A stretch of DNA of 64,000 nucleotides from Hyaloraphidium curvatum SAG 235-1 (GCA_025558095.1 JAIVFI010000028.1:1-64000); one strand, 5' to 3'; positions 13,462-49,444 are shown, counted from the first letter of the stretch. Program-made: numbers and translations. The notes: generated by a model not told the origin, from the letters alone.

Positions 13462-15136
13462 ATGGGAATCCCTCAGGAAATCGCGCCCGGGATCGCAACG
13501 GGCCCGGCTCCGGACGGAAACGCGGACGCGTCGCCCGATGCGTCCCCCGCCTCCTCCACTTCTCTTCCCGCCACGCCGTTTTTCACAGCATCAGAGCTGC
13601 TCACCATGTTCCCCGCCGCTCTGCCGCCCCCCGACGACCTGATCCCCGGCGCCATCCCGCCCGACCCTGCCGCCGAGCTCCGCGAAGCCGACCCTCTCAA
13701 CGAAACCGCCCTCCTCCGTGCCCTCGCGCCCTACCCTGCCCTTCGCGCCCTGGCGCGCTTGCAGCTGGGTTTTGTGCCCCTCTGGAGCACATTCACCGCG
13801 CCCCTCCTCGTCGCAAACACAATCGCTGCCTCGGGGACGCTCGCGGCCTCCTTCGTCTTCGGCGTCGACACCTTCGGAAAGCGTAACCTGGCCATCACCG
13901 GGGGGCTGTGGGTGCTGCTCATGCTCTTGATCACCGTCCTTGCGCTGTCGAGGGTCTCGTCGCGGAAACGGAGCTTCGCGGCCGAGGGCGGCGACCTGGG
14001 CTCCGTCCCGTTCGCGCCCTTCGCGCGGTGGCACCAGCTGGCGGGCAGTTTCCCCGCAAAAGACACAGAAGACGGCCGCTCATCTTCGGGCGGAAACATC
14101 TCGCCCCTGGTGCGCCACCGGGACGGCGACCCCCTCTGCCCGTGCCACCGCTCGACGTGCGGCGGCTCGCTCGTCGGTCCGGCTGTCTTCTTGCGCTGCT
14201 TGGACATCATTGCGCGTTACCTCATCCTTGTGGGGGGCTATTTTTTCGCGGGTTACACCGCGCTGGTCACCTTCGGCCGGCAAACGTGGACCACTCCATG
14301 GTCGGCCTTTTTCGCCGCGCTCCTAGGTGGGTAGGTAGAGGGTCCGCCTCGGCCATGCTGAACCGTCTTCCCAGTCTTCATAACGGTCGTGCTGCCGCTT
14401 CTGCCGGCCATCGCCATCGGGGGGAGCAACATCTACTCGCTGCGCCTCGGCCAGAGACTGCACTGCCGCGGGCTCCGGCGCGTGCTGGCCGCCTTCCTCT
14501 CTCGATACGAGTCTGCCCTCCTCGGCGGCAAGACGCCGTCGGTGCGGACGCGGAACCCTACGAGGACATCTGCGAGCGACTGGCGGTGCTGTGGCGCAAC
14601 CGGTTCCCGAGCAGATCCGCAACGCCCGTCGTCATGACCAACTACCTGCTGGTTCCTGTTATCGTCGCCATTGCCACCATTGTGAGTCATTCCGTCTTGA
14701 CGCCGCACCCCCGTTCACGCCCCCGCCCGAACAGATCTCGGGCTCCTGCATCCCCGCGTGGCCCTTCTTCACCTTTGCCTACGGCCTCCTCCTCGTCTTC
14801 ACCGACCTCGTCAACCACGCCTCGTCCAACTCCCAGGTTTCCGCCGCCTCTTCCCTCCTCCGCCAGGCCGCCAAGGAATCCACGCGGCTCCTCGCACGCG
14901 CGTCCGCCCAGGGCCTCGCTGCCAGCCCCGCCGCCGCCGCCCTGGCCCGGCACGCGGAGCTGCTTTCAGCCTACGCGGCCGCGGACGGATGCAAGGCACG
15001 GTTCGCGGGGTTCGTGGTGACGTACGGGACTGCGAGGACGTTCGCGGTCACGCTGTTCACCCTGGGGGTCGGGCTGTGGAGCGTGCTCAGGGGGGCGGGG
15101 GTGTACGTGGTGCCCGACATTGCGTGCCCGGCGTAG
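13462..15136 (+). CDS. 7-TM membrane protein, DPLCPC family paralog 1 (2 introns; apparent frameshift near 14540)
   Basis: Shares DPAAELR..DPL, DPLCPC..TCGG, TWTTPWS and the C-terminal GFVVTYGTARTFAVTLFTLGVGLWSVLRG motif with 38927-40324 and 47828-49444. Introns 14327-14374 and 14682-14734. The frame changes between GGKTPSV and DAEPYEDI. Confidence 0.75.
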
Positions 15137-15256
15137 GAACCAGAAGATCCCAGTACAAGGGCTTGGGATTCACAGCCGGATTCGTGAATGAATTGAACCT
15201 TCCCTAACCCCTGTCTCCTAGCCGTTCCCGGGGAATCCTAACCGCCGCGCGCGGAT

Positions 15257-16328
15257 TCACGAAAGGCCCCCGCCAAACACCTCGACCCCCTCCTCCTCGG
15301 CGCGCTGCATGAGCTCGTCGTCCGCCATCTCCCCCTCCTCCTCCACGACCTCCTCCTCACCCGGCGCCCCAATGGCCCCCGGCACCCCGCCAAACAGCTC
15401 CCCCCACGCCTCCCTCAACCCCCACACGCTATCCACCGTCCAACCCCTCCCCTCCAACCCCGGCCTGCACCGCGGCCACGCGAGGTGGTTCCTCTCCCTT
15501 TTGGCCCGCGACTTGGCGACCATCTCCGCCGGCATGGACGTGAGCAGGTGCTCGGCGTCGGGCCCGGCGGCGTGGTGCGCGCGCGGGTGGCCGGGCTCGT
15601 CGAGGTGCGCGGCGTGCCAGCCAAAGTGTGTCCGCGCGACGTCTGGAAACAACGTCAGCGGCCGAAATCGCACGCCAGCAGCGGGAGAACCCACCGCAGT
15701 TCTCCCAGTTGTCGTCGATGAAGTAGATCTGCAGCCTCGGCCCCCCTTCGTGCCGCGCCTCGGGCCCGTACTCGGCCAGCCACCGCTCCCACACCCCCGC
15801 GTCCTTCATCGCCTTCACGTAGGCCCCCGCCTCGGGCTTGGCGACGAAGAACTTGTCGCGGTAGTCGCACGCCGTGATCCCGTCGAAGTGGTGGCGCACC
15901 TTCAGGGCCCCGAGGATCCTTTCCGCGTGCCGCATCTGGCCGTTGGTGAACACGTGCTTCCTGTACCCCTTGAGTGAGGACAAGAACGAGTCCAGAATCC
16001 CCGGCAGCTCCGGCGGCAGCAGCTCCAGCGGCACGCCGCCGTCGACGTGCCTGTCGAACGCGTCCACGTCCACGTCGAACTCGTCCACGAGGCCGTGCAG
16101 CGACATGCCGTAGGCGTTGAACCACTGGAAACACCGCCGGCGGCTCTCGTCGTCGGTGAAGCCGATGGTGCGGCAGAAGGAGTAGAGGTTTTCGGTCATG
16201 TGCGCGCCGATGCCGCACGAGCGCGGGTACAGGCAGTTGTCGAGGTCGAACACGAGCAGCGTGTGCGCCGGGTCCGGCAGAGTGGGCGGCGGGCCGTCGG
16301 CTGCAGCCGCCGAGGCGCCTGACGGCAT
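15257..16328 (-). CDS. HAD-superfamily pyrimidine 5'-nucleotidase (SDT1/PHM8-like)
   Basis: Motif I VFDLDNCLYP, then YGMSLHGL, FTNG, HFDGITACDY, AKPE and YFIDDN. Intron 15643-15694. Confidence 0.9.
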
Positions 16329-16947
16329 TGCGGCGGTGACGAGGCGGGCCGGCGGGCGGTGTTGTCTTGGGCGAAGCGGGGCCGAGGCGGCCGCCAATCG
16401 CGGCCCGACGGTACGAGCGAGACTGGCGAAAAGGCGATGTGGCGAAATTTCGGTCAATGGAGCCGGCGGAACGGAACAGGAGCTGTGGAGCGGGTCGGGT
16501 ACACGTGGAAGCGGGTCCGCGATCTTCTGCGGACTCCCGGACCACAGACCTGCGATCGTGCGTTTCCGACTTGCGAGCCAAAGGCATCGAAAGACGAAGC
16601 TTGACCTCCTAAAACTGTCCTCGATGGCCACTTTCCGTTGGTAGACTGTCCCCAGCTTCTCTCTATCCCGCCCGGTGGAGGCTGCCCGGTGGGCTGTGGC
16701 GACTGTTGCCCCGATGGCGCCTGCCGCCGCGTCTACGCAATCCAGCGTGTCACAGCGTCGCAGCGCTGCTGCACCCTTCTTTCGACCAGCCCTCGACCTT
16801 GTATCTGGATCATGCGGGAAGCGCGCGCATATCAATATATCTCGTCGGCGGATGTTTACACGGGACTTTGGATGTTCCTGAAAGCACGTCAGTCTGCGGC
16901 AGCAGCGAGAGGCAACGCAACACGTGCCTCCGGGATCCGCTGCCGTC

Positions 16948-17568
16948 CTATGTCGGGCATGTCGCCGACAGCGTGGGGCACGTCAGGCCATACTTGACGT
17001 ACCAGTTGAACAGCGTCCCTCCCGTCGTACGTCCGGTAGTGCCGACGGTGTTTAGCTGATACATATCAGTGCCCACGACGGCGTATGCGGCGCACGACGA
17101 CCCCATGCTGGTGCACATGGCAGCGGCCTCCGCGTCGGAGGATACTGGCGTCACATACGCGGGAGCACCGCTGCAGGGGGCAAACGTGCCGCAGTCGATG
17201 TACTCGGGGGCGTAGCGCCGATATAGCGAATGGTAATCGGTGTCCTTCTGGCCGATGCAGGCGACTTGGTCCTCCGACGCACCGGGGTGCCCGAACTCGC
17301 TGCGGGGCGGAGCGCGGCGTGATATGAGCCGTCCGACGTCGCCGCGGTGCCGCGGGATATTCGTTACCAGAACGTGTCCTGCCCGCACTCGGAACACGAC
17401 CGGGCAAAGAGGATGTGTGAAGGGCCTCCGTCCCCGCCGCGGACAGGCCTGGCGGTGCAGGGTCAGGAAGTGCGGCCCGGCGGAACCACTCGCGCGGTCT
17501 TACGTGGCCCCCGCGAGCGCAAGGAGAGCGGCGAAGGTGACAAGCAAAAGCAGCAACGGGCGTGACAT
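16948..17568 (-). CDS. Secreted precursor, LYRRY family copy H with a different mature domain (3 exons)
   Basis: MSRPLLLLLVTFAALLALAGAT | intron 17449-17503 | PVRGGDGGPSHILFARSCSECGQDTF | intron 17300-17367 | CEFGHPGASEDQVACIGQKDTDYHSLYRRY, then a 6-Cys domain unrelated to those of copies A-G. Confidence 0.8.
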
Positions 17569-17739
17569 GGTGGACATTGGATTGGTGTTTGAGGTGAGTT
17601 TTCCGCAAACCCTGCGGCGGGGGGGGGGGGTGTTCGGTGAGGGATGCTGCACACCTTGCATGGAAGGTCACCGACAAGGCGCTCCATTGATAGAGCGAGC
17701 TGGTTCCGTAATGTTTCACCCGCTCTGGCTTGGAATTAG

Positions 17740-17778
17740 TCTTCCGTGTGCACGCCACCATCTTCCGTGTGCACGCCA
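17740..17778. repeat. Tandem direct repeat with an 18-nt identical core (TCTTCCGTGTGCACGCCA x2, 21-nt period)
   Basis: Seen directly, about 170-210 bp upstream of the copy H start codon. Confidence 0.85.
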
Positions 17779-18103
17779 GCTGCTTGCGATGATTTCGCAT
17801 AGGGACAAATGACCTCACACGCCCGTTTTGCGATCAATTACTGCCCGGATTTCTACACCGTGGTCGGGGCGGTCAGCGGCCCATGAATGGTCTAACAACA
17901 GGGCGGGATGTCCCGTATGGGCGGCCGCACTCCTGAAGCCTGATCGAGGGCCACTTGCAGCACCTGACTCATGTCGGCTGTGTTTGTGCCTCCAACCCCC
18001 GACCCCGAGATGTTCACCGCTGGTCAAAAACACACGGTACGTCCTTGAGCGAACCAGCTTACAACGACCATGAATCCACCATGATATCCGGGATCCCGAT
18101 CCC

Positions 18104-20177
18104 CTAGGGTCCCCCGCCCGCCATCTCCCCCGGCTCCTGCACCATCCCCACCCCCGCCAGCCCCGCCGCGACCTCGTCCACCCTCCTCTCCAGCTCCGGA
18201 TCCTTGTCCCCCCCCTCGTTCGCATACCGCTCCCCGAGCTCCTCCCCCTCGAGCACGTGCGGCAGCACGGGGGACGCGCCGAGCCCGTACGCGCGGAAGT
18301 AGTCGTGCCCGTCCGTCGACCTCCCCCTCGTGCTCCTCAGCAGCTTGAGCGCGGCGTGCTGCTCGTGCGCGGGGTTGCCGGCCAGCTGCGCCTGGAACGC
18401 CGCGGACATGTCGGCCAGCAGCGTCGGCAGGCCCTCGAGGAACCACCGCTTGTCGTCGGCGAGGTGCGGCGTGGGGGTATCGGCGGTCTGCGGGGAGAGC
18501 GCCGAGGCGGGTGTGCGGGGGGGGGTGAGGTTCTCCGAGGTGGGGGCGATGTCGAGGGAGAGGGACCGCTCGACGGCGCTGCTGCGGCGGCGCTGGATCG
18601 GGAGGGTGCCCGGGTTCTCGCTGGCGCCACGCACGCGGACGGCGGGCGCGGCGCGCTGCGAAAGGTCGTCGGAGGGGGTCTCGGGGGCGTCGGCGGGGGA
18701 GACGGGGGTCGCGGCGCGGAGGGTGAAGCTGTCGGTCGAGACGGCGGCCGTCGAGGGGTTTGAGATGGTGGAGGCAGGCTCGGAGGTGTTGGCGACGACG
18801 GTCGCGGGGGAGGGGGAGGGGGGAGAAAGCTTGTCCGTGTCCGATCCCGCTGCGGAGGCCTCCTTGGTCACGATTTTCTGTCCGACCCAAAGTCAGCGAC
18901 AACGAATACCCCACAGAGCACGGTCGACGTACCCGAATGTAGTTCCTGACCACGTGGTTCTTGCGGATGTTTGCCAGCCACTTCTTCTGGTCTGGCAGCA
19001 CCGGCGTGGTCGGATTCCCCGGCGGCGAGTCGTGCATGGAGAACCAGGGGTGCTTCAGCGCCTCCTCGGGCTTCAACCGCTCCCTGCACGGCCCGAGGTC
19101 AGCTCTCCCGCGACCCGCACGCGCCCCGCAACGACCCACTCGGGATCCACGACCATCAGCTTCCCCAGCAGATCCAGCGCCTCGGGGCTGACCCATTCCG
19201 GCTCGGGAAACTCCCACTTGCCGCGCTTGATGTTGTTCATGATGGTGGGGGCGTCGTCGGCGTCGAAGGGGTAGGAGCCCGAGAGGAGGATGAAGAGGAT
19301 GACGCCGACGGACCACATGTCGACGGCGGAGCCGTAGGTGCGGCCGCGGATGATTTCCTGTGGGTAATCGTCGTCAACAACCATTCCCTGGCGGACGCAA
19401 GAGACGCCAGCCGCCACGGAAACCCACCGGCGGCATGTAGTGGAACGTCCCGCACCGCGTCTTGAGCAGGTTCCTGTTGTCCGAGTCGGCAAAATTGGCC
19501 AGCCCAAAGTCCGCAATCCGCAGCTGCCGCGCCCAGTCGTCCGGCCCGCGCGGCTCGTCGGCCAGCAGCACGTTCTCGAGCTTCAGGTCGCGGTGCACGA
19601 TGTGCCGCTCGTGCAGGTACACGATGGCCGACAGCAGCGCGCGCAGGATGTGCCGCGCATTGTCCTCGGGGAACGACGGCATGGCCGCCAGCCGCGCCAG
19701 CAGCTCGCCGCCGCGGCAGTCCTCCTGCACCATGATGAACAGGTCCCGCGTCTCGAGCAGCTCGTACAGCCGCACGATGTTGGGGTGCGACACGGAGCCG
19801 AGGATGCCGATCTCGCGGAGCAGCTGCTGCACGTTGCGCATGGTGCCAAAGTCGTGCTTGCGCAGGATCTTGATCGCGTAGCTGTGGCCGGTCGAGAAGA
19901 CGTGCACGCGGTAGACTGCGCCGAACGAGCCCACGCCCAGCTCGGCGTCGATGCGCCAGAAGCGGTCAAACTCGATGACCTGGTCCGCGCGCCGCGTCTC
20001 GAGCGTGCGCACGGCGTACTTCGGGTACGGCCGGCGGATGCGCTTCTGCGCCTCGGCGCCGTTCTGCACGGCGCGCACGAGAAAGTGCTGCTCGCAGTCC
20101 GAGTACGCCGTCTCCCCCGGCGGCGGCGGCGGCAACAGGTTCGTCCGCAGCTGCAGCGGCGACTCGGGGAACGACAT
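18104..20177 (-). CDS. CAMK-group Ser/Thr protein kinase with a Ser/Pro-rich C-terminal tail (3 introns inferred)
   Basis: LGVGSFGAV, YAIKIL, HPNIVRLYE, HRDLKLENVL, IADFGLA, CGTFHYMPPE, DMWSVGVILF and EALKHPWF. Confidence 0.92.
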
Positions 20178-20439
20178 CGCGGCGGGTTGGCCCGCTAGAG
20201 CGGAGTCCGACCGGCCCCGTCCGCCGCACTCCCTCGTCCGCGCCTGCCGGCTATCGCCTAGCGCCGGACTCCAAAGAAATCATGCCCCGGTCGGGCGCAC
20301 GGCGGGAATGGGGTGGGGAAAGGTGGGGCGAAAGAGGCCAAACGGCTGACGACCGTGCGGAAGATGGGACTCGGCGGAGCCGGCGATCGAGCAGATTCAT
20401 CGCACTATCCGATACGCACACCGCCAAATCAGACCTCCG

Positions 20440-22021
20440 CTAGCGCTTTCCGACCCCACCCTTCTCGATGCCCTCGCCGAGCAGCCCGTCGCCGAGTAGC
20501 CCGCACTTTTCGAGGTCCAGCGGCGGGTACCTCGAGCTCGGCACGAAGCGGTCGTCCCTGACCGGCCCCGCCGAGGAGTGCAGCGCCACGATCCTGCGGC
20601 ACCTCTCCCCCCCGAGCGCCTCCCTGATCTCCTTGTATGCGAACGACGACCTGCTCCCTGTCGGCTGGCCGACCAGGGGCAGCTGCATCCCCATCAGCGC
20701 CACCCTGATCCTCCTGAACATCAGCTCCCCCGCCTCTTGGTTCCAACCGTCCCCGTACGCCGCCCTCCCGGCCATCATCAGCTGGTCCACCGCGTGCTCG
20801 ATGAACCCCCCCGGCCCGGCGCTCGCCAGCGAGTGCCTCTTGCGCATCGCCCTCTCGCGCTCCCACCACCCCCCGCGCTCGTAGCAGTCGAGCAGCTGCG
20901 GCGCGACGTTGGGGCGCAGGTTGCCGTCGGGGGCGATCCACCTCCGCGCGAGGGCGAGGGCGGTGATGGCGTGGTGGAACGCGCGCTCCGTGAGGAAGTT
21001 TGCGAACCCGTCGCCGGCCGCGCCGCCGGGGAAGGCCGGGGCAAGGAGCGAGTAGAAGACCCCCAGCGCGGTGCGGGAGGGGACGAAGCCGTGCGCGGGT
21101 GCGAGGCTGGCTCCGATCTTGGCGACGGGCTCGTCCAGGGAGACGCGGTTGCAGTTGGCGACGAGAAAGTCCGCGAGGCGGTCCAGGTCGAGGTAGGGCT
21201 TGCGGTCGAGGAAGTAGCCCTGGAGGAAGTGCAGCCAGTTTGCGGACCAGCCGATGCGGACGAGGGCGAGGAAGCCGTCCGAGTCGACGGGGCCGGCGAT
21301 CGCCTCGTAGCGGAGGAGGTTGGCCGCGAGCTTGGTCGTGCTGTGCGTCACCGGCAGGAAAGGCGGCGAAGTGAGAATCGAATCGCCGCGCGCTCAACCG
21401 CGAAATAACCCACTCTCCGGCGCCTGCGCCGTTCAGCACCGCCCGCACCCTCTCCTTGGCCGGCCGATCCCACGCCCTGCACACCAGCCTCGCCGACGTC
21501 TCGAGCCACACCCAATCCCGGGAGCGCAGCACGAAACGGAGCACCCGCTGCAGCACCTCGGGGGGCATCCTGCGCTCGGGGTTGCGGAGCATCCTGTTCC
21601 CCACGCAGGCCGGGCATTCGGAGCGCCCCTCGCCGTACGCCTCCTCGGGGAAGAACCCGCCGCATCCCGCGCACGACCACTCGGTCTCGTCGCGGCCCTT
21701 GCTCTCGACGACCACGAATCCGCGGCGGAAGCTCTCGATGCTGTCCAGCGCCTCCCTTGCTTTCGCCTCCCGCGCCTCCCCCGCCACCCCGATCCGCCCA
21801 GCCAGCGGCGGCGCCAGCAGCTCCCTCAGCGCTTCCCGCGGCAGGGGGCACGTGCGCTCCGGCGTGGGCGCGGTGAACGGCGCGCCGACGTGGCGCTGCG
21901 CGACCGCGGCCTGCCACGCGAGCCCGTCGGGCTCGTCGAGGAAGCGGGCAAAGCGCGAGGGGACCGTGCCGCAGACGAAGCCCAGCGCGGCGAAGGCGTC
22001 GTACGCGGGGACGGAGGCCAT
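20440..22021 (-). CDS. Hypothetical protein with a CxxC..CxxC zinc ribbon and F-box-like motif (1 intron)
   Basis: WSCAGC...ECPAC, then RRMPPEVLQRVLRFV...ARLVCRAW. An intron at ~21340-21412 (GTGGGT...CAG) joins it to the 20440-21351 frame. Confidence 0.65.
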
Positions 22022-22481
22022 TTGCAGGGCTCGTTGAGGGCGACGAGGAAGCAAAGTGCAATCCAGTCCCGCTGGAGCACGAGCCGGGGCGCTCGCGTCG
22101 CACCAACTTCCGATTCCCTCGAAGGTCGATTAACCCACATCGGGCAACCTTTTAAGCATTTGGTGAGTGAGCAGCGAAGCCACCTGCCAGGCACAGACTA
22201 TCCCTTTTTCGCTCATGAGCGTTCTGTGGAGTACGTCCCGAAACTGATCTAACCACTGAACCTCCATTTGACTATCTGAAGGCCAACGAGTAATTCACTC
22301 GGAGCAATAGCTTCTCGGGATAGCGTACGAACTCCATCTTCGGTTAGCCATCGCCTTCAGGACAAGTGTTGGCGCGACCCCCGCCCGGTTTCGACGGGCT
22401 TCGGAAGATCCGCTTGCCGAACTTGCCGCCATCGCACCATCTCCCACGAAACCGCCCCTCACCCCGCAGCATCGCGCCGCC

Positions 22482-23794: not shown

Positions 23795-23925
23795 GTCTGC
23801 CTTCGTGTTGTTGGTGTCCATGCATGTCTTCGCTGGCCCCACCTTTTGTGGTCCGAAACATTTCAATTCAGATTCCCCGACGATTCCATTAAGGCGCACT
23901 ACACAGACTGACTTCGTTTCACTGC

Positions 23926-24732: not shown

Positions 24733-25177
24733 CGTTAACGCAGCTGGCACCGGAGCTCCTTGCACGAGAAGACACAAGATTCCGCTTGCTTGGTGTTGGG
24801 AGGGGCGCCGCGCCTAAACGGAGGGCCTCGAACGGCCCGTTCGGCCACCAATAGTCATTCCCGCCTCATCCGGTCCCAACCGCGTAGCACCGCCCTTGAA
24901 ATCCTAAACCGGCCACGGCGACCGGCGCACGAGGAAGAAAGGCGGAAACGGCAAACTTGCAGAACACGAGGGAAAGTGCTTGGAGCACCGAAGGAGTGGC
25001 GGCTCGCCAGCCGGCATGCGAGCGTTTGTTGGCCGGAGGCGGCAGAGCGGCTGTCGGGCGGGCGGGGTCCCGAAAGCGTCCCTTCGACCCCGCTCCAGGT
25101 CCCAACTCTATCCCAGAGGCAAGAACCACATGAGACGCATCCCAAGCGTCAAAAAAGAAGACGGCAGCATTCATGCG

Positions 25178-26867: not shown

Positions 26868-27228
26868 GGCGGCGGGCGATGGAAGGGGGGAAGTGGGTTG
26901 GTGGTGGTGACGGGGCGGTGGTGATTCATTCGGGGCGCTTCGTCACGCGATGGGCTTGCAGTGAACTGTACATCACCGCACCGAGATTCGGCACGAAAAG
27001 GCTACGAACCTCGTGGGCCGGATTCCAAAGTAGACCAACGAAGGCCTGCTCTTCAAAGGGCCCGCACCCGGCACTCACTCCCCGCGTCTTTTCGTCGCTC
27101 CGAACCGCAGAAGATTCCAGATCCCCTGTGCTACAGATTGCTCGCTATGCACCTTGGACTTTTATCCAACGGCCCCTCAATCCGACGGGAGACGGAATGC
27201 TGATGACCGTGGCCCTAGCGTTCGCCTG

Positions 27229-36792: not shown

Positions 36793-36810
36793 TACCCCAG
36801 CTCACTCAGC

Positions 36811-38660: not shown

Positions 38661-38926
38661 AGAGCGGGCTCCTGGCCACGGATTGGTTGGTGGGGCGTTC
38701 GAAAGGGGGTCGGCGGGGCCGGCGGGCGGCAGCGGTCCAGACCGGTGCGGCGTCCGCATCCACCGCGTCCGCACCCTGATTCTGTCTTTTCGGCCCGGCA
38801 GGAAAGTCACTAAGTACAGCTGGTCTTGAATGTACAGCTGATCCTATGGTGGTCGGCGCACCTCATACAGGTCCAGATTAGGCGGAAGTACTTTGCGCCG
38901 CGGTGTACTCTCGCACGACGAGCCCC

Positions 38927-40324
38927 TCACACCGCAACACCGCCGCACACCGTGTCGAGGACCACGGCGACACCTGCGCCCCTCGCCAAAGTCCACACGC
39001 CGACCGCCACGGTGAAGCCCGTCACCGCGGCGGTCCGCACCGTCGACGCATCCACCGAGCCCCCAAGCCACCGTCCCCTCACATCGTCCGCGGCGAGCAG
39101 ACGCAGCACTTCGGCGTGGTGCACCGCCGCCTCGGTCCCCATCGCGCGGAGGTGCAGAGCGGCGGCGGCGCAGAGTTCGCGTACAGAGGAGATGCCCGAG
39201 TTAAAGTAGGCGACGAGGGTCAAGTCGCGCAGGATGAAGAGGGAGTTAAAGAGGAGGGCGACGGGGAGGAACGCCGGAAGGCAGCTCGAAGAGGCGGCAA
39301 AGATGACGGCGGCGAGAAAGTAGAGTACGGAGATGGTGCTCATATAGCGGCGGACGGTCGAGGCATCGGCTAGGAACGACGCCCATATGCGAGCGAGCGA
39401 AGCATGCAGGGCAAAATAGGGCTCGGCGAGGGCCGAGGTGGGTACCTCGCCGCGGCCGGACCGGGCCACCAGATCGCGCAAGAGAACGCGCATCGCACGG
39501 CCGCGGAGCCTTGTGGAGAGTGCCAAGGGTGGGTGGTGCTGGACGGTCAGCGAAATTGAGCTAAAGCATTCGAAGGCGATTATCGAAGCCAGGAAAAGGA
39601 AGGCGAAAACGGCGCTCCAGGGCGTCGTCCACGTGCTGCTGCCAAAGGTGACGAGCGGTGTCCAGCTTGTGGCAAACAGGACGAAAGTTTCAAGCAGAAA
39701 ATGGGCCCCCACAACAAATGCCATGTCCGAGGCTGCAGCCCTGTCTGGGATCGTGCCCGCACACGTCTTCCTGGGGCACGGGCACAGCGGGTCCGAGTCC
39801 TCATGCTTGATGAGCACAGACCCGTCGTCCACCTTTGCCAGCTGGATCCATCGTGCGGTGCCGGCGTACGAGAGCGTGGAGGCGTCCGAGGGAACGCCTT
39901 GACGGACCCGGCGGTGGGCCCTGAGCAACACGCCGATTGTGAGCGCGGACGAAGGCACCCAGATGACCAATATGCCAACTGCCGAAACGGTGAGCGAGCT
40001 CTGCGGGAACAACGTGCCCCGCCCGTTAAACACGAAGATAGGAGCAAGGTTCACCATGAGCAGCAGCTGGACGCACAGGAGCAAAACGAATACGAGCGGC
40101 TGACCGGGCGTAATCGTGGCCTGAAAGCTCGAAAGGAGTGCCGCCGCAGGGTGTTTTCGCAGCGCCGCGCGGAGGGCGTCGCGTGTCAGCGGTTCCGACT
40201 TCCGGAGCTCAGCGGCAGGGTCCGAGTCGCCGGCGGCGGGCACCAGAGGCGCCCGGAGAGAGGGCGATGCGGGCTGCGGGAAGAGCGCCAGCCATTCTCG
40301 AGCGCTCAGTTGGAGCGGGGCCAT
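38927..40324 (-). CDS. 7-TM membrane protein, DPLCPC family paralog 2 (intronless)
   Basis: LSAREWLALFP, DPAAELRKSEPL, DPLCPCPRKTCAG, TWTTPWS and GRWLGGSVDASTVRTAAVTGFTVAVGVWTLARG. Seven hydrophobic segments. Confidence 0.85.
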   Translation of the reverse strand: MAPLQLSAREWLALFPQPASPSLRAPLVPAAGDSDPAAELRKSEPLTRDALRAALRKHPAAALLSSFQATITPGQPLVFVLLLCVQLLLMVNLAPIFVFNGRGTLFPQSSLTVSAVGILVIWVPSSALTIGVLLRAHRRVRQGVPSDASTLSYAGTARWIQLAKVDDGSVLIKHEDSDPLCPCPRKTCAGTIPDRAAASDMAFVVGAHFLLETFVLFATSWTPLVTFGSSTWTTPWSAVFAFLFLASIIAFECFSSISLTVQHHPPLALSTRLRGRAMRVLLRDLVARSGRGEVPTSALAEPYFALHASLARIWASFLADASTVRRYMSTISVLYFLAAVIFAASSSCLPAFLPVALLFNSLFILRDLTLVAYFNSGISSVRELCAAAALHLRAMGTEAAVHHAEVLRLLAADDVRGRWLGGSVDASTVRTAAVTGFTVAVGVWTLARGAGVAVVLDTVCGGVAV

Positions 40325-40639
40325 ATCGGTTGCTGGGCGGGCGGAAGGAAGGAAGGAAGCGTGGAAACCTCGAAACGTCCCCCGGCCGCATCCGAACGTC
40401 CAACCGTTGAGCGCGGGCAACGAAGAGCGACATTCAGTTCGCGCACATTCCCAACGTTCTTCTCAAATAATATATTCATATTAGTGGTTCCCATTGTCTG
40501 TACACGTGTGTGGCGTCGGCCGACCGGCGGGCCTCAACATCCGGCCGCGGCGGATAGTGTCCGGCGTCTATGTTAATCCCAATAGTGATGATGGAGCCCG
40601 CCCGGCGGGCCCCGAGAGCGTGCGGAGAGTGGTATCCCA

Positions 40640-43586
40640 TTAGGGCATAGCCTGGAAGCCTTGCATGGAAACGGAGCGGCGAATGACCTCGACGTTGCCG
40701 CACCGGTCGCGCACCGTGAGCTGCACGGAGTAGTAGTAGTACTGCTGGTCTGTGTCACTGGTGGGAACTTGCGTTAAACGAAGCAGCGCGCACTCCGTCG
40801 AACTGGCCCTTACGCGTGCGATGCTGCGTTGAAGGTCCCAGATAGCACCCCCTTGAACTGGTACGGGCTGTGTTGGTGGCAGAGGAACCCCTGGCAGTGC
40901 ACCAAGTTGACGTCCCAGGTGAACATGGACGCCGGCACCGCGGTGCGGCGGTCCCAGTACGTCGCCGTGGCGGCGAACTGCACGTTCGTGTCCGGCGGGG
41001 CGATAAGGCCCTCGGGGGGTTGGGTCATGGTGACGATCGGGGCGTACGGCGAGCTCGGGCCGCAGTACGCCTTGACCTCGGCCCAGTTGAAGTGCGAGGG
41101 CTGCCACACTTCGCCGCGACGGGGGTCCAGGTGCGGCGCGACGGCCGCCTGCAGGCTCACGCGGTTGAACCGGTGCAGCCCGCGGATGTCGAAGGACAGG
41201 GGGTTCGACCCCAGGTCCATCCGCCGCACCAGGCTCGAGTTCCACACCACTCGGCTGTCGTCCACGGTGCGAACGGTCCAAGAGCCCGAAACGTTCAGTT
41301 GCGGGCCCGTGTTGTTCAGGCCGTAGTGCGGGTAGAACCGCCGCACTTCCTCGTCGACGCCGACGACGCCCGTGATTCGGTAGCAGCAGCGGTTGAGAAG
41401 GACGTCGATTTGGCTGGAGAGGCGGTCGAGCCGAGTCAGCACTCGAGCTCGCAGCCCCCCAAACCCGCCCAATACCCACCTAAGCGCGTGCGTCCCCCAT
41501 CCGGTGATGTACCAGCGGTTGTTGATGTTGAGCGTCCTGCCCGTGTTGGCCTGCCCGCTCAGACCGACAGAGGCGTCCAGGCCCACGGGGCCCCAGTTGC
41601 CGTTTCTCGCGAACCGGAGCCTGCTCCTCGGCCAGCCTTCCCTCGACAGGAAGGTGAGGTCGCCGATGGGCTGCTGCCCGGTCGCCGCGGCGCAGGTCGG
41701 CACGACGATGCGCGCGGCGCCCGTGGGGTCGCAAAGCGGATCCGGAGGGCGCTTGGAGGTGGTGGGCACCGGCCGTGCGGTAGTCAGCCGCGGCACGGTC
41801 GGGTTGGGCGGCGGGGTGAAGCCCGAGATGCGGAACCGGATGACGGAACCCTGCTGCGCCTGGCTCAGGTAGTAGAGCCATCCGTCCGTGCCGACGCGGA
41901 AGGTGCACGGCCCGTCCCCGCCGTAGAAGAACGTGACGGTGCCGCCGCCCGGGCTGACGGCCCAAACGCGGCCCGAGGTGTAGTCCGCGACGATCCACCG
42001 ACCTCCGACGCCGGGGTAGTAGGAGGGGATCTGCACGCCGCCAATGGCGGCGGACGAAGCACCGTCGTGGTTCCACTGGAACAGCACGCCCTTGTTGCCC
42101 GGAATGCCGGCGTACGGGTTGTCCCCGTTGAGGATGCGCTGGCAGATGGGCGTGCCAGGGACCAGGCCGGGAGAGACGTTGGTGCCTTCCCAGCTGAAGA
42201 ACAGAAACGCGGCGTCAGCAGAGCGGTGCCGTCCAGCCTGCCTCCACCACCCACCAAGGCCAGCCCATGTTCTGCCCCCTGTAGATGACCTTGAGACTTT
42301 CCCACGTGTACCACCCCACCTCGCCGCAGTACACCGCGTTCGGCCCTCCGGAGCAGCGGAACGGCTGCCGCAGCCCCACGGCCCACACCTTGCACCTCGC
42401 GGACCAGACGGAGCCCCCGTTGCAGAACGGGTTGTCCCTCCGTCCCGCTCCCGTGTCGGGATCGATGCGGAGGATCTTGCCGCCGAGGAAGTTGGGGTCC
42501 ATGGACAGGGCGCGGTCGACGAGGCCCTGGCCGTTCGAGTACCAGAAGGTGCCGTCGTGGATCTGGCCCTCGCCGACCGAGACCCAGAGAGAGCCGTCGC
42601 CGGCGAACCACAGGGAGCCGATGGAGTGGGTGGTGCCGATCATGGGCTGCGTGGGGGACGGTGGGTGAGCCAAGGAGGCAGCAGCAGGCGACAGAGGGAC
42701 GTACCGAGCAGTTGTCGTTGTAGTTCCACTGGATCGAAAGAAGGGGCCGAAAAGCAGGGTCAGCATCACGTAAACGATCCCGGCGACCGCGCGAAACAGG
42801 GGCCGGATGACCGTCGGGGCTGCGGCTGGTTGCGGGCGGTGTCAAGCCCGAACTGTGTGCCGCAGCCGGCGCAAGGGCAGCATCCCCATCCCCCGCGACG
42901 GAGAATCGGCGCCTCCCATCCCGTAAGGCGGGGTCAAAATCGCCGGTTGCGCCCGCCCCCGACTGAATCCGACGGCCGATGCCCCGTCCACGCGGTCCCC
43001 GCCGTCGGCCACCCGTGTGACTCACGCTCCCGTCCAGCCTGCACGTGCTGCCGAAGATCACCCTCTCGTCCTGCAGGGCATCGTTGCGGTACGTGAACCG
43101 CGAGATCATGTTGTAGTTGCCACCTGCGGCGGCGGGGGGGATCAGGGGCTTTCGCGGCGGCCGGTGCTGTGGTACGCACCTCCGTTGTGGTTCGGGTCGA
43201 CGGTGTACCCGATGTAGATGTATGGACGTCCTCGGTAGAAGTCCCGATCGATGGCGAAGCCCATCAGGCCCCGGTCTGGTCGAAACGAGCGGTTAGCGCG
43301 TCCGGGGGCGGCATTTCCCCGAGGACGGTGGCCCACCTCCCTGCGACGGCGCCACGCGGCCCGTAATGTCCACGAGCACGCGGGACCATCGCCCGTTGCG
43401 GAAGAGCACGAGGCGGCCCCGGCGGCCCGCGATGATCAGGCGCTCCTCGTCGAGCCACTGGAAGTCGGACACCGAATCTCCGAACGTCGCCACGCGTTCG
43501 GCAATGACGCCCCCGGGGAGTCCGCTCGGCCACGCAAGCGCCCGCCCACATAGGGCGAGGAGCGCGAGGAGGAGGAGCGGGATCAT
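40640..43586 (-). CDS. Secreted PQQ-dependent glucose/sorbosone dehydrogenase-like protein with NPCBM/NEW2 and C-terminal Ig/PKD-like domains (multiple introns)
   Basis: Signal peptide MIPLLLLALLALCGRALA. GSDH motifs DRGLMGFAID, THSIGSLWFAGDGSLWVSVGEG, GKILRID..DNPF, GLRQPFR and GEVGWYTWE. Pro/Thr linker. NPCBM-like WGPVGLD..GRTLNIN..GWGTHA..GVVGVDEE. Confidence 0.8.
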
Positions 43587-44301
43587 GGCTCCTGGCGCGT
43601 GGGGAGGGGTCGGGGGGAGTGCCTGTGGCTGCGGCACAGGAAAATCCTCTCCAAGCCCTTCGGTACCAGCCCGCCTGACTTTCACACAAACGTGTCCCTC
43701 ATTTTTCGCGGATGGAGCGTCCGGAGGCCGACTACCGGCTGGATCAGCTCTTCCTGATCTTAGTCGATGAGAGACCGGCCCCGAAGCTGAACCCACGTGG
43801 CCGAATTCCGGTTTCGGCTTCCCACACGGAAGATAAGGCACCAGGACTGGCCAATCGTCGCAACAGTCGCACAGAGCGTGAAGAAATTGCCATATTTTAA
43901 ACCTGGGATTTTCCTCGTCGCGCATCATGGGGAGCAAGGCCGGTTGGGAGGACCGTGTCGCGAGGGACAGCTGGCGGGACGGGTTCACTTATCGAGGTCC
44001 GATCCACGCCATCAGCGGATGCTCGTACATGATTGCAATTGATCGGTGCCTTTATCGTGGACACCTTGTTAAATGGGATGGTTGCGTGCATGGCCTGGTC
44101 GAAAGAAGACTGCCACTGGCGCGGAGACGCGTCGCAACAACGCGGCACAGGCACCGTGCCCCGCCGCATCCGCCGCTCCGCCCGCCCGCCCACCGCGGCG
44201 CCGGCATTTTTGGCATTGTTCCATCCGGGCCCCGTGGGACCGAGGCGTTCCACCGGCGCGCCGCCGGGAAGGCGGGTCCAAACAAGGGCACGCTACTCGG
44301 G

Positions 44302-45879
44302 ATGGAAGTTCGCGAACCGATGGGGATGGCCATGCAGCCGGCCGTTCTCCTGGCAGCGAACACGATGGACAACGAGGGAATCGCCTCGGATGGACGGGAA
44401 GTGAAGGCGGATGCCGGGTTGGCGCCCGTCGCGGGTTCCCCGGCTCCCCCGGAGGTGCACCCCGCTCCCGCCCCGACCGCGGCGCCGCTGTGGCTGCCCG
44501 CGCTGCCCGGCCCCGCACAGCACCTCGTGCTCGCGTCGCTGTCGGCCGCCGATCTGTGGTCGCTGTGCCGCACGTCGACCGCCGCCCGCAGCGCCGTCGC
44601 GCACGGCTTCCACGCGTGGCTCAAGGACGCGCCGCTGCACCACTGCAACCCCGCGCACGCCGGAAACACCGCGCCCGCCAACCTGCCGCTCGCCTTCCTC
44701 GCCTTCGTGCTCGGCCTCGGCAACCCGTCGCCCGGCTCGGAGCAGTGGCGCTCCTTCCGCAAACTGTACCGCCGCTACGGCTCGCAGGCCGCGGTCCCCG
44801 CGCCCCTCACGCCCGCCGACGTGGCCGACGCCCGGCGCTGCCCGCTCGGCTGGGACCCCGCCGACTGGAACTCGCCCGCCTACGACCACCTCATGAACGA
44901 CCCGCCTGAGTACCTCGTCTCGCGGCCGCTGCCGCTGCGCATGCGCGAGGCGCTGGGCCAGCTGGTCTGGAGCATGGTCTACTGGATGTGCGACTCGGGC
45001 GGCGACCCGTACCACATCCGGCGCTGGCCCCTGCGCGTGCAGCCGCCGCCCGACGAGGACCCGGTCAACGGCAGGCTGGTCGAACAGGGCCACTTCAGGC
45101 GGCAGCCGCCCGTTCGCCGCATCCCGCGCGAGTGGGCCGACGACGCCGCCGAGCCGGACGACCCGGAGGAGAAGCCCGGTCCGCACGGCGAGGAGTCGCC
45201 CGTGCTGCGCGCCCTGCGCGTGCGGCGCTACCTCGACCGCTGCTGGACCCTCATCTGGCGCTTCGCCGGCCCCGTCCCCAGCGAGATCCTCGCCGCCTCC
45301 AAGGGCCTCGCGCAGCACCGCGACAAGCGCCGCCGCGGCCCCGCCCGCGCCGACGCCGAGTTGCACGCCGACGCGCTCGAAACCTTCCCGCACCCGGCCA
45401 GTGTGTGCTCCAAGAACCTGTACCCGCGCATGCTGCTCAACCTGGTCAAGAGGGGGGACTACCGCACCCTGGAGCTGCTCCTGCTGTGCTTCGGCGCGCC
45501 CGAGAAGGAGTGGCGCACGGACCTGCGCCGCCCGCCGCCGCTGCCGCCCACCAACAACGGGGAGAACGGCACGCAGCCGCAGCAGCAGCAGCAGCAGGAG
45601 CAGAAGGAAAGCTGCTGCGACGGGTGCCTGCGCTTCGACCCGCCCGCCGGCGTGCCGCCGCCCCCAGGCGGGAGGAGGTGGCTCGTTTGGTTCACGCAGA
45701 AGGGGTCCGGTGGGCCGCACCTCGCGCTGGACGGGGACTGGGACACCTCGGCGCCGCTGTACGGGAAGGTGAGGGCGGTGGTGGATGCGCACGGAGGCAT
45801 TCTGGGGAGGGCGCCGGTACCCGAGGCTGCCGATGATGGTGGGGTGCTGGGCGGCATCTTTGGGCTGCTGCCGATCTGA
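44302..45879 (+). CDS. Hypothetical protein with an N-terminal F-box-like motif (start codon uncertain)
   Basis: WLPALPGPAQHLVLASLSAADLWSLCRTSTAAR. Long GC3-rich ORF with a short CAG/polyQ tract near 45580. Confidence 0.65.
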   Translation: MEVREPMGMAMQPAVLLAANTMDNEGIASDGREVKADAGLAPVAGSPAPPEVHPAPAPTAAPLWLPALPGPAQHLVLASLSAADLWSLCRTSTAARSAVAHGFHAWLKDAPLHHCNPAHAGNTAPANLPLAFLAFVLGLGNPSPGSEQWRSFRKLYRRYGSQAAVPAPLTPADVADARRCPLGWDPADWNSPAYDHLMNDPPEYLVSRPLPLRMREALGQLVWSMVYWMCDSGGDPYHIRRWPLRVQPPPDEDPVNGRLVEQGHFRRQPPVRRIPREWADDAAEPDDPEEKPGPHGEESPVLRALRVRRYLDRCWTLIWRFAGPVPSEILAASKGLAQHRDKRRRGPARADAELHADALETFPHPASVCSKNLYPRMLLNLVKRGDYRTLELLLLCFGAPEKEWRTDLRRPPPLPPTNNGENGTQPQQQQQQEQKESCCDGCLRFDPPAGVPPPPGGRRWLVWFTQKGSGGPHLALDGDWDTSAPLYGKVRAVVDAHGGILGRAPVPEAADDGGVLGGIFGLLPI

Positions 45880-46059
45880 TGGGACGTGAGAAGTTGGAGG
45901 CACGAGGTGGATGGCAGGAGATGCTTGGAGGATCGATACGGATATTGGTTTTGCTTCCTTGGGAGAGACGTGCGAACAACCGGTATTGTAACATATGTCG
46001 ACGTCTGCGGATACACCGTCCAACTGCACGCTGCTCACTTTCCAACCGCCGCCTTGCCA

Positions 46060-47616
46060 TCACAACCTGGCCGGCTTTGCCCCCCACAGGTTCGCCGCCC
46101 CCACCCTCTCCGCCTCCTCCGGCGGCGCCGCCCCCACCCGCATCAGCAGCTCCCCGATCAGCCTCCCCGCCCACGCCGGCACCCCTGCCGCCCGCGAGAG
46201 CGCGAGCCCGCACAGCCCGCGGACGTACCTGTCCCCGTCCCCCGCGGCGACGGGGACCAGCTCCGCCGCGTCGTCCGGGGACAGCGACCCCGCGCAGGCG
46301 GCCTGCACCAGCGCCAAGGCAGCGCACTGCCGCACCGTCGACCGGGACATCCCCGCGTTCGCGACGGTGTCCTGCTCGGCGCCCGGTGCCAGACGGTCAA
46401 GCAGCGCTCTGACGGCCTCGCCTGGGATCCCGTGGGCGCGGGCGAGGGTGCCCAGCGCGTGCGCGGCGTTGCTGCGGGCCAGGTGGTCGGGATCGGTCGC
46501 GAGGACGCGGGAGAGGGCGGCGGGGAGGGAGGGGTGGGGGAGCCGGAGCTCCCCGAGGGCGAAGGAGGCCATGCGGCGGACTTCGGGGGCGGGGGAGTCG
46601 AGCGCAGAGACGAGGGCGGGGAGGGCGGAGGCGCCATGCAGGGGGAGGAGGCGGCCTGCGAGGCGGCGGGCGGGTTCAGAGGGGTTGTTGAGTTGGGAGG
46701 CGAGGGAAGCAATGTCCTCGCCGGGAGCCGCGACGGGCTGGCCGAGGAGCCAGGACCACGTGCGCCGCGCGGCGGCGGCAAACGGTGCCGGCATGCCGGA
46801 AAAATCGGGCTCGAAGCCGTCCGAGTGCGCCCAGCTCGGGGCGCACGGCTCCGAGGTGCGCAGGAAGGTGAACTTGGCCATGAACCTCAGCTTGTCGCAC
46901 CCCGGCGCCTGCCTCGTGCCGCGGTGCACGATGTCGTGGTGCACAATCACAAAGGCGCCGGCTTCGGGCAGGGTGAGCCTCTTTGCGGCGGCCGGCGCGG
47001 GCATCGTCGCCAATGCCTGCGCCAGCCTCCTGTCCCTTCCCGCGAGGTCCGGGTCGGACCCCGCCTCGGGCGTGAAGCCCCTGTCCAGCCTATCGTCCCC
47101 GTGCACCTCCTCGCCGTCCTCGAACGAGTTGTCAAAGTACTGCGAGCCGGGGACCACCTCCGTCGGGCCCATGTCATCGCCGACGGGTTGAGGGTAATAG
47201 AAAACCAGCACGGCGGTGGGGAAGTGGCTGCGCACGTGGCCGCGAGCGTTCCAGGGCAGGTTGCCGTCCTGGTGCCAGCCCTGGTCGTTTGGCGTGGCCT
47301 TGTGGAGGAAATGGTGCGGGTGCAGCGCGGCATCGTCGCCCAGGACGCCCTTTAGGGTCGTGCGGAGGGTCGGGCAGGCGAGCACTTCGCGTAAGGCGGG
47401 AATGCGGGCGAGCAGGTTGTCGCCGAGGTGCGAGAGGTGCGGCGTGGGCGCTTGGCGCGCCTCTTCGGACAGGGCGGCGAACGATTCGAACAGCTTGGCG
47501 TGCACCGCCGGGGGCACCTCCGAGGGGGGCGGGCGGACGACGAGGAAGCCATCGCGCACGAAGGCGGCGACGGAGGCGTCGTCCATCGGGGGCAGAGGGG
47601 TGTCCTTGTTTGCCAT
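46060..47616 (-). CDS. Phytanoyl-CoA dioxygenase (PhyH)-family Fe/2OG enzyme fused to HEAT repeats, intronless
   Basis: FVRDGFLVV, QGWHQDG (HxD), MGPTEVVPGS, IVHHDIVHRG and RFMAKF. HEAT-like LPALVSAL..EVRRMASFALG. Confidence 0.85.
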   Translation of the reverse strand: MANKDTPLPPMDDASVAAFVRDGFLVVRPPPSEVPPAVHAKLFESFAALSEEARQAPTPHLSHLGDNLLARIPALREVLACPTLRTTLKGVLGDDAALHPHHFLHKATPNDQGWHQDGNLPWNARGHVRSHFPTAVLVFYYPQPVGDDMGPTEVVPGSQYFDNSFEDGEEVHGDDRLDRGFTPEAGSDPDLAGRDRRLAQALATMPAPAAAKRLTLPEAGAFVIVHHDIVHRGTRQAPGCDKLRFMAKFTFLRTSEPCAPSWAHSDGFEPDFSGMPAPFAAAARRTWSWLLGQPVAAPGEDIASLASQLNNPSEPARRLAGRLLPLHGASALPALVSALDSPAPEVRRMASFALGELRLPHPSLPAALSRVLATDPDHLARSNAAHALGTLARAHGIPGEAVRALLDRLAPGAEQDTVANAGMSRSTVRQCAALALVQAACAGSLSPDDAAELVPVAAGDGDRYVRGLCGLALSRAAGVPAWAGRLIGELLMRVGAAPPEEAERVGAANLWGAKPARL

Positions 47617-47827
47617 GTTGGGAGACGCTCCTCCCTACAGTTGGCACCGACAATTGTCACCGTAGACTCAAGGCACTGTAGGTGATGCGCGATCCTGCAG
47701 CAGCCGCTACCGTCTGCATCTAGCGATTTTCGTCGATCAGTATGCTGACATGATGGATCTGATGGCAGATGGACAGGCATGGGCTGCTGCGGGACAAGCC
47801 CCCACAGCATCCCTCTCCCCATCCCCG

Positions 47828-49444
47828 CTACCTCGTCGGGCACACCGTCTCCATCGTCAGGAACACGCCCAACCCCCTCAGCATGGACCAAACCGCCACC
47901 GTCAGCGTGACCAGCGTCACCGCGAGCGTCCTCAGGATGCCGTAGTCCACAGGGAATCCCAGCAGCTTTGCGCGGTAGCGGTCCGTGTCAGCGTAGCTCG
48001 CCAGCAAGTCCGCGTCGGCGTCCATCTCCATCAGAAGGCGCAAGTCGGGATCGCCCGGGCCGGCGACGAGGCGGCGGCGCAGCTCGCGGAGGGAGCGGCC
48101 GGCGGAGAGGTAGAGGTCACGGATGTCCGAGATCTGCGCGTTGGCGGCGGCCACGTTGACAAGGTCGAAGAGGAAGTTGCTCGCGGTGACGTACAGTAGG
48201 TAGATCGGGTACTGGGCACGCAGGCAGGAGCACCCGACCACGTTAGCGAGGCCGAATACGACGGCCGCCGAGGCGGGGAGGAAGAGCGCGGCGGAGGAGT
48301 TGTACTGTCCGACCGCCTTGCTCCAACTGCAGGCGAGGACGTCGTGGAGCTGCATGTATCCTGCGTGCGCGGCGCGGGGCGGTTCGGGGCCGCGCTGTCC
48401 CTGAGATGCGGCGGCCATCCGGTATCGGTCCATCAGCGCGCCCAGGGCGAGCCGCATGGCGCGCCTGTTGATGCGGCGCTTAAGCCGGAGCAGGGGCAGG
48501 TTGGGAGCCGAAAACTTGTTGATGATCACGGGGGCAAAAAAAGCGGCGAAGGAGGCGAGGAGAAAAGTCACCGCGGAGGTGGACCATGCCGTCGTCCACG
48601 TGCGGGGCGCGAGGCTCGGGGATATGGCGACCGTCCAGATCGCGGCCAAGGTCAAAGCCACGCTAAGCGCGACTCTGACCAGCACCTCGGCGATGCGGGA
48701 CAGGGCGACCAGGCGGGGAAGGTTCCCGCAGCACTGAGGCGCGCTGCAAGGGCAAAAGGGGTCCGCGGGATCGTGCGCCAGAATGACGGGTTCTGCAGGC
48801 GCCGGCAGGGAGCCGGACGACAGTTGAATCCAGCGGGCGAGCCCGGCCAGGCCGTGCGAGGAAAAGTCGCGCGCCGGCCGCACAGCGGTCTTGCTCTGCT
48901 TGCCCACGCCCAGCGGGTGCACGGCGCCGAAAATATTTCTGTAGGAGGCCAGCAGCGCGGTACCGATAGTCGTGCAAGTGTAGAAGGCCATCGAAGTGGC
49001 GGTGCCCACGGCCAGCTGCGTCGTGCCGAACGCGCCGTCGGCGAGGAGCCACGGAATTGGCTGGACGAACGCGCAAGCTACCCAGAGCTGCGCGTGTCGG
49101 AGCAGCAGGCGCCGCGTCCACGGCTCCATGACGATCTGCGGTCGCACTGTCGACGCCAGGAAGACCGAGCGTGTCCTTAGAGCGTCGATAAAGTCGTCCA
49201 GCACCAACGGGTGCTCCCTGCGGGCCGCGGCGGCGGGATCCTCCACGGGCGGCTCGTTCGGCAGCTGAGGAACCCACGGCACGCCTGCTGGGAGAACGAC
49301 CAGCCACTCCGCCTCGCTGAGCGCAAAGGGCGCCGGCGGCACGTCGACCTCCTCCTGGACCTTCGCATCCGTTGTGGCCCTGTCAGTCATGTCGGCCAGG
49401 GACCCGCTGGACCGTTCGTCTCCCGTTCGCCCGGGACTGTCCAT
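47828..49444 (-). CDS. 7-TM membrane protein, DPLCPC family paralog 3 (intronless)
   Basis: LSEAEWLVVLP, DPAAAARREHPL, DPFCPCSAPQCCG, TWTTAWS and LLASYADTDRYRAKLLGFPVDYGILRTLAVTLVTLTVAVWSMLRG. Confidence 0.85.
   Translation of the reverse strand: MDSPGRTGDERSSGSLADMTDRATTDAKVQEEVDVPPAPFALSEAEWLVVLPAGVPWVPQLPNEPPVEDPAAAARREHPLVLDDFIDALRTRSVFLASTVRPQIVMEPWTRRLLLRHAQLWVACAFVQPIPWLLADGAFGTTQLAVGTATSMAFYTCTTIGTALLASYRNIFGAVHPLGVGKQSKTAVRPARDFSSHGLAGLARWIQLSSGSLPAPAEPVILAHDPADPFCPCSAPQCCGNLPRLVALSRIAEVLVRVALSVALTLAAIWTVAISPSLAPRTWTTAWSTSAVTFLLASFAAFFAPVIINKFSAPNLPLLRLKRRINRRAMRLALGALMDRYRMAAASQGQRGPEPPRAAHAGYMQLHDVLACSWSKAVGQYNSSAALFLPASAAVVFGLANVVGCSCLRAQYPIYLLYVTASNFLFDLVNVAAANAQISDIRDLYLSAGRSLRELRRRLVAGPGDPDLRLLMEMDADADLLASYADTDRYRAKLLGFPVDYGILRTLAVTLVTLTVAVWSMLRGLGVFLTMETVCPTR

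Follow-up and report, generated by a model that had tools for sequence, protein, structure and literature searches.

Seven-transmembrane ion channels (7TMICs), which take in the insect Or, Gr and Orco proteins, the gustatory-receptor-like proteins (GRLs) and the plant DUF3537 family, are recognized on structural criteria: seven transmembrane segments (TM1 to TM7), a long TM4-6 anchor domain and the splitting of TM7 into TM7a and TM7b (Benton & Himmel 2023, PMC9998090). In the literature searched, the 7TMICs known outside animals amount to a single candidate in each of two Spizellomyces species, six genes in Thecamonas and Vitrella, and families of 4-12 genes in plants (PMC7746228), and published structural screens recovered no chytrid members. 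In the same literature, the 7TMIC fold is reported from fungi only as single genes, and no paper links Hyaloraphidium with GRLs or 7TMICs. Here we analyze a 64,000-nucleotide (nt) stretch of DNA (hereafter, the window) from Hyaloraphidium curvatum SAG 235-1 (GCA_025558095.1 JAIVFI010000028.1:1-64000), an atypical non-flagellated fungus in Monoblepharidomycota (PMC8371127). The window carries three members of one 7-TM protein family, designated genes A, B and C. The family numbers some 400-450 genes, and the predicted structures of B and C find their best matches in the insect channels. On balance we favor the view that B and C are subunits of 7TMIC-type channels, with an anchor-mediated assembly, a pore lined by TM7b, ligand specificity residing in TM1-TM4, a zinc site and a disulfide.

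Searching the window in all six frames with a profile built from 20 paralogs returned exactly three copies of the family, at the positions where a sequence-only reading of the same DNA had placed three 7-TM paralogs. Gene B (38927-40324, minus strand; protein P0001, 465 amino acids) and gene C (47828-49444, minus strand; protein P0003, 538 amino acids) are intact single-exon open reading frames (ORFs), with coordinates that include the stop codon, whereas gene A (13462-15136, plus strand) comprises three exons and two introns and its frame is broken in exon 2. Both C-terminal peptides quoted in the sequence-only reading were found, the first at the C-terminus of C and the second at that of A. 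Its count of three holds for the window; genome-wide the family has hundreds of members, and one of the three copies, A, is broken.

When 1.84 billion representative proteins were searched exhaustively by HMMER, a 20-sequence profile recovered 457 of them at E<=1e-3, of which 409 pass E<=1e-10 and 288 pass E<=1e-30. Ten members, drawn from across the full rank range of the best 150 of the 457, were without exception H. curvatum sequences annotated as 'hypothetical protein' and forming single-member clusters. So far the family is therefore known only from H. curvatum, as judged from these ten, and the genome-wide count that had been suggested, together with the host of the sampled members, agrees with the proposal of a lineage-expanded family in a basal fungus. 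Six-frame searches of the 31.9-Mb assembly gave at least 66-100 matches per search, drawn from 676-759 first-look candidate segments. A three-sequence C-terminal alignment run against Joint Genome Institute (JGI) metagenomes produced 297 pattern matches, none of which was confirmed, a weak negative. Word-index searches for proteins, queried with B, the 20-sequence profile or the C-terminal region of C, recovered only the window's own proteins; as candidates were crowded out by low-complexity words, this outcome carries no information on relatives.

The structural evidence derives from AlphaFold2 (AF2) monomer models of B, built from 20 paralogs (predicted local distance difference test, pLDDT, 90.2; predicted template-modelling score, pTM, 0.87), and of C, built from 94 (pLDDT 89.8, pTM 0.88). 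Each model was aligned to one representative per 40% cluster of the Protein Data Bank (PDB; 48,161 chains). For both B and C the insect Or/Gr/Orco channels were the best and the sole full-length matches, the only chains to cover at least 300 residues in order, and nearly all PDB cluster representatives of the insect channel family ranked at the top of the list; global similarity of the models to Orco, Or and Gr stood well above that to unrelated 7-TM proteins. Foldseek likewise placed the insect channels first, with probabilities of 0.99-1.00, weak E-values (0.013 and 0.026) and TM scores of 0.31-0.44, and in the ESM Atlas a shape search matched unnamed clusters from cnidarians and echinoderms with TM scores of 0.58-0.66. 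The structures on which AlphaFold2 was trained were released prior to the first Orco structure. Given that order of events, the insect-channel fold of these models would not be a memorised template. The PDB holds no structure of PHTF, so this protein could not appear in the PDB searches.

No natural G-protein-coupled receptor (GPCR) was found within the top 50 structural rows of either model. A GPCR or transporter identity was rejected on the basis of the predicted N-in topology and the structural matches to insect channels. None of the outcomes that would have contradicted a chemoreceptor-like channel fold (N-out topology, another number of TM segments, or a GPCR or transporter as best match) was seen for B or C, and the AF2 monomers and Foldseek both point to Or/Gr/Orco, as the sequence-only reading had anticipated.

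The layout of the helices is consistent with these matches. B displays seven hydropathy peaks, and seven TM helices are present in the AF2 secondary structure of B and of C; neither hydropathy nor the family loop analysis revealed a hydrophobic, signal-like segment at the N-terminus. Over 118 members, the three outer loops have mean lengths of 15, 16 and 5 residues and the three inner loops of 68, 74 and 66, so that the alternation of short (TM1-2, TM3-4, TM5-6) and long (TM2-3, TM4-5, TM6-7) loops described earlier is seen in hydropathy, in the models and in the family means alike. Lysine plus arginine residues average 30 on the proposed inner segments versus 2 on the outer ones (N-terminus 5.7; inner loops 1-3, 6.9, 9.0 and 8.6; outer loops 1-3, 0.5, 0.5 and 0.1; C-terminus 1.0). 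This positive-inside bias and the AF2 helices agree with the N-in, seven-helix arrangement put forward for the family, and the predicted topology is N-in, C-out.

In B the modelled helices span residues 59-91, 108-141, 192-218, 235-262 plus 267-290, 302-346, 352-395, 398-412 and 426-449; C follows the same layout, with long helices at 286-346, 362-405 and 411-461. Judged by helix lengths and by the full-length superpositions, TM4-6 are long and project below the bundle in the manner of an anchor domain. TM7 is split, with a structured loop between its two parts (cytoplasmic TM7a 398-412 and membrane TM7b 426-449 in B; 468-484 and 501-524 in C), and in both models the TM5-6 turn and the C-terminal tail form a small beta bridge. 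TM7b is encoded at 38978..39049 (minus strand, residues 426-449) in B, where it is the most conserved helix and putatively lines the pore, and at 47873..47944 (minus strand, residues 501-524) in C. The B and C models thus combine seven helices, a predicted N-in/C-out orientation, long TM4-6, a split TM7 and similarity to Orco, Or and Gr, which are the hallmarks by which 7TMICs are recognized.

Several results weigh against reading the family as 7TMIC-type channels. No Pfam family matches B, C or the pieces of A at E<=10; a Pfam search with 94 members found no 7tm_7, 7tm_6, Trehalose_recp or DUF3537, returning only scattered noise (FCD, GP41, Claudin) in one to three members each; and the family profile finds nothing at E<=10 among PDB sequences. 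The TM7 motif (T/S)Yhhhhh(Q/K/E)(F/L/M), which 7TMIC papers call diagnostic, not definitive, occurs in none of 150 members; in fixed register the only positions to fit are an invariant threonine (T438 of B) and, in some cases, the last hydrophobic one. Both AF2 models were built on paralog-only alignments. Finally, comparison of inner and outer TM-helix halves over the 118 members gives no clean pattern of a variable outer pocket. The PF12056 and PF08395 models match nothing over the whole genome, but control genomes were equally silent, which makes this search uninformative. Sequence-level membership in known 7TMIC families is not supported: the parallels to 7tm_7 and DUF3537 drawn in the sequence-only reading were not recovered, and the DUF3537 C-terminal pattern cited there is without statistical support.

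Such silence at the sequence level is what might be expected of a lineage-specific membrane family that had reached a similar seven-helix arrangement by convergence and has no homolog among the 7TMICs. We regard this explanation as improbable, since the insect channels rank first for two paralogs that are just 29% identical and are their sole matches over at least 300 residues in order, and since both models reproduce the unusual combination of a split TM7 and long TM4-6. Independent sequence-embedding neighbours point the same way. Language-model features place B near unnamed arthropod and echinoderm clusters and DUF3537, and C, among named clusters, near DUF3537 (seven hits), 7tm_7 (nine hits), GUR-5 and SRR. 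It is at this feature level that the suggested relation to DUF3537 and 7tm_7 finds agreement, in searches that use sequence, not structure, and in which the match to DUF3537 (0.92-0.93) constitutes a lead and no test. Distant homology to the 7TMICs would account for these observations.

Conservation across the family was quantified as column entropy over 118 members. Entropy is 3.07-3.19 bits in TM1-TM4, 2.45-2.84 bits in the cytoplasmic anchor helices, 1.55 bits in the TM5-6 turn and 1.70 bits in TM7b, the outer half of which reaches 1.38. The C-terminal concentration of conservation noticed earlier is thus seen family-wide. In Orco the gate lies at the outer end of TM7b, and the corresponding region is the best-conserved part of TM7b in the fungal family. 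In B numbering, the invariant or nearly invariant positions fall in inner loop 1 (H174, D178, C181, C183, C188), where the TM4 extension begins (R272, R276, A277), in the TM5-6 turn (C348), in TM6 (N375), ahead of TM7b (G421), within TM7b (R430, T438, W444, R448) and in the extracellular tail (G451, C460). A segment reading E-W-L-A-L-F-P is conserved near the N-terminus.

Inner loop 1 carries the motif H-x3-D-x2-C-P-C-x(2-4)-C, in which H174, C181, C183 and C188 are conserved in 100% of the 118 members. The family-specific cysteine cluster that had been singled out in this loop is accordingly present, invariant and extended to a His/Cys/Cys/Cys (H/C/C/C) set. In B the motif, here H-x3-D-x2-C-P-C-x4-C, lies at 39761..39805 (minus strand, residues 174-188), with pLDDT of 88-96 across the coil; in C it lies at 48731..48775 (minus strand, residues 224-238), and H224, C231, C233 and C238 are invariant in the 94-sequence alignment. 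The motif probably binds zinc and stiffens inner loop 1, and the invariant cysteines C348, in the TM5-6 turn, and C460, in the tail, probably form a disulfide. The invariant H/C/C/C motif, the invariant outer cysteine pair and the conservation profile are new here, as is the status of gene A described below.

These features can be assembled into a working model. The family proteins would be distant homologs of the insect Or, Gr and Orco channels, the GRLs and plant DUF3537; the anchor helices would mediate assembly into a tetramer, the highly conserved TM7b would line a central cation pore, and the variable TM1-TM4 bundle would confer a distinct ligand specificity on each paralog. The H/C/C/C motif would serve as a cytoplasmic zinc site and C348 and C460 as an outer disulfide, with B and C acting as working subunits and the family as a whole constituting a chemoreceptor-like repertoire of ligand-gated channels. 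The analysis establishes the fold, the predicted topology, the pattern of conservation, the size and host of the family and the transcription of A; channel function is inferred.

The same fold might instead serve proteins that are not ligand-gated chemoreceptor channels, such as non-conducting receptors, scaffolds or internal-membrane proteins, as may also hold for PHTF and most 7TMICs outside insects. For most 7TMICs it is not known whether they act as channels (PMC9998090); the invariant H/C/C/C motif in the cytoplasm and the N-terminal E-W-L-A-L-F-P segment suggest family-specific intracellular partners, and the outer halves of the helices are not the focus of variability. Against this stand the strong conservation of TM7b, the pore helix of Or/Gr channels, above all in the outer half where the Orco gate is situated, and the existence of several hundred divergent paralogs, a number typical of ligand-recognizing receptor families. 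We consider a non-channel role unlikely, yet serious enough to be kept in view next to the ligand-gated channel that we favor.

The family is dispersed and divergent. B and C are 29% identical to each other, and among the matches listed their best paralogs (44% identical for B, 54% for C) are both on other contigs. A tree of 118 members places B, C and protein P0130, which stands proxy for A, in separate clades at distances of 3.4-3.8 substitutions per site. Genes near the copies encode a C2H2 zinc finger protein, a HAD hydrolase, a RabGAP-TBC protein and a protein joining phytanoyl-CoA dioxygenase (PhyH) to HEAT repeats; because these neighbours are all ordinary genes, the copies are dispersed and not tandem.

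Hundreds of dispersed copies in a 32-Mb genome, some of them broken (A, and other matches containing stops), would also be expected if the genes travelled with a mobile element or belonged to some other selfish unit that multiplies quickly. When the three window loci are compared with 29 others, however, their DNA is alike in coding sequence only, the flanks being unlike. The copies share only 25-55% protein identity and are therefore old; their neighbours are ordinary genes, and the three window copies belong to different clades. Carriage as transposon cargo was rejected because the flanks of the copies have no DNA in common, and a selfish origin of any kind appears to us very improbable indeed.

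Gene A, which matches the profile in four collinear pieces spread over three frames, was analyzed exon by exon and frame by frame. Exon 1 (13462..14326, plus strand) covers profile positions 7-256 (E 5.6e-55), from the N-terminus through TM1-TM3 into the beginning of TM4, and contains the H/C/C/C motif at 14116-14160. Intron 1 (14327..14374, 48 nt, GT..AG) has two in-frame stops inside it. Exon 2 (14375..14681) completes TM4 and continues through inner loop 2 into the initial portion of TM5. Intron 2 (14682..14734, 53 nt, GT..AG) lies just ahead of the conserved G-S-C-I-P turn between TM5 and TM6, and exon 3 (14735..15136) encodes the end of TM5, TM6, TM7a, TM7b (15023-15094), the C-terminus and the stop codon (profile positions 364-489, E 5.7e-43). 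All of these features are on the plus strand, and both introns are skipped by an RNA contig. The introns of A are thus situated in TM4 and just before the TM5-6 turn; B and C have none.

The break in A is confined to exon 2, where profile positions 254-312 match in frame 1 and positions 317-365 in frame 3, an assignment with which tblastn using paralogs agrees. The frame 1 match runs to an 'R-L-x-x-R-A...L-L' segment and the frame 3 match from 'E-P-Y' onward, which places the switch at ~14524-14536, in the poorly conserved linker of inner loop 2. Intron 1 preserves the frame, and frame 3 of exon 2 joins correctly to exon 3 across intron 2. No intron fits the switch, and the RNA contig has neither insertion nor deletion there. 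Read from the start codon, the upstream frame ends at a stop at 14635-14637, after TM4.

The RNA contigs come from a public run that holds 79% of sampled words and that is RNA-derived, since its contigs lack short segments with GT..AG or CT..AC ends, not just in A but also in the gene on either side. The contig over A begins at 13377, covers 13377-14324 and drops both introns. A is therefore transcribed and spliced, and its frame break is common to the genome and the RNA contig, resting as it does on the assembly plus this one contig. Because the message stops after TM4, A cannot yield a full-length protein, and we read it as a recently disabled copy (a pseudogene) or as a gene encoding only a four-helix stump. 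With two introns, a frame shift in exon 2 and the stop at 14635-14637, A is not an intact gene.

The closest relative of A is P0130, which is 66-79% identical to it and has an open first exon; A exon 3 is 79-81% identical to P0130, and the P0130 locus is split at the same place as intron 2 of A. P0130 (C29:500068-501788, minus strand) is annotated as a protein of 552 amino acids whose first exon reads through the GT…AG segment aligned to A intron 1, and its public gene model may thus retain this intron. An RNA contig matches the last exon of A (window 14925-15103) and then continues into unlike sequence, which encodes a paralog-type C-terminus (…S-F-T-I-E-S-V-C-P-G); transcription thus extends to at least one further member of the family, the assembler having joined paralogs through the conserved TM7b.

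The neighbours of A (12000-12885 and 15074-17368) are also spliced by RNA contigs, with minus-strand introns of 49-68 nt (12157-12205, 12669-12726, 15643-15694, 16877-16926 and 17300-17367), most of them with CT..AC ends; one reads CC..TG with a three-base ambiguity and may simply be shifted. Expression of the HAD-hydrolase gene at 15429-16835 is confirmed by the RNA contigs. Adjoining copy C, the gene at 46060-47616 (minus strand) encodes an unusual fusion protein, a PhyH domain followed C-terminally by HEAT repeats. The most GC-rich part of the window (8363-10609, 76%) holds long overlapping ORFs on both strands; the plus-strand ORF has a C2H2 zinc finger close to its end, and the minus-strand ORF (747 amino acids, no Pfam match) is probably a shadow ORF.

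In its broadest form, our proposal is that a unicellular fungus not known to swim at any stage runs ~450 ligand-gated 7TMIC channels, expanded independently of insect Or and Gr and equipped with a cytoplasmic zinc module and an extracellular disulfide. We advance this only tentatively and judge it somewhat more apt to fail than to hold. If true, the repertoire would be the largest outside animals in the literature searched, and one ancient fold would have given rise on two or more occasions, once in a microbe, to large ionotropic 'smell and taste' repertoires. None of the non-animal 7TMICs in the literature searched has a known function, and a fungus with several hundred divergent and expressed copies would offer a microbial system in which to address their role. 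The family would likewise provide a deep alignment of natural sequences on which to map the pore, the anchor and the pocket of the 7TMIC fold, and would let one ask whether chemoreceptor-like repertoires can grow large where there is no nervous system.

Set against known systems, the H. curvatum family differs in scale from the chytrid GRLs, which were compared by description. Those of Spizellomyces punctatus and S. palustris (GRL1) are likewise candidate 7TMICs from chytrid-grade fungi with the expected secondary-structure features, and they keep about a quarter of the TM7 motif positions, much as the present family does, but they are reported as one gene per species versus ~450 in H. curvatum (Benton et al. 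2020, PMC7746228). PHTF, placed with the Class-B eukaryotic 7TMICs, is deeply conserved and low-copy; the family described here lies nearest Class-A by language model. Plant DUF3537 (PF12056), with 4-12 genes per genome (PMC7746228), resembles the fungal family in carrying the 7TMIC fold outside animals with a TM7 motif that is 'largely unrecognizable', and it is among the nearest named clusters by language-model features; unlike DUF3537, the fungal proteins give no hidden Markov model match to PF12056 and bear cysteine motifs not known in plants. From the insect channels used for comparison (MhOR5 7LIC, AaegOR10 8V02, BmGr9 8VC1, DmGr43a 8JM9 and Orco in 8Z9A) the family is set apart by 6-12% identity in structural alignments, by the lack of a 7tm_6 or 7tm_7 match and of the TM7 motif, by a first inner loop of 50-70 residues with its invariant H/C/C/C motif, by invariant cysteines located at the TM5-6 turn and within the extracellular tail, and by its fungal host. 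With the insect Or, Gr and Orco proteins it shares seven helices in a predicted N-in orientation, short outer and long inner loops, a TM4-6 'anchor', a TM7 divided into TM7a and TM7b, a C-terminal helix that is the most conserved of all, and a large and divergent repertoire.

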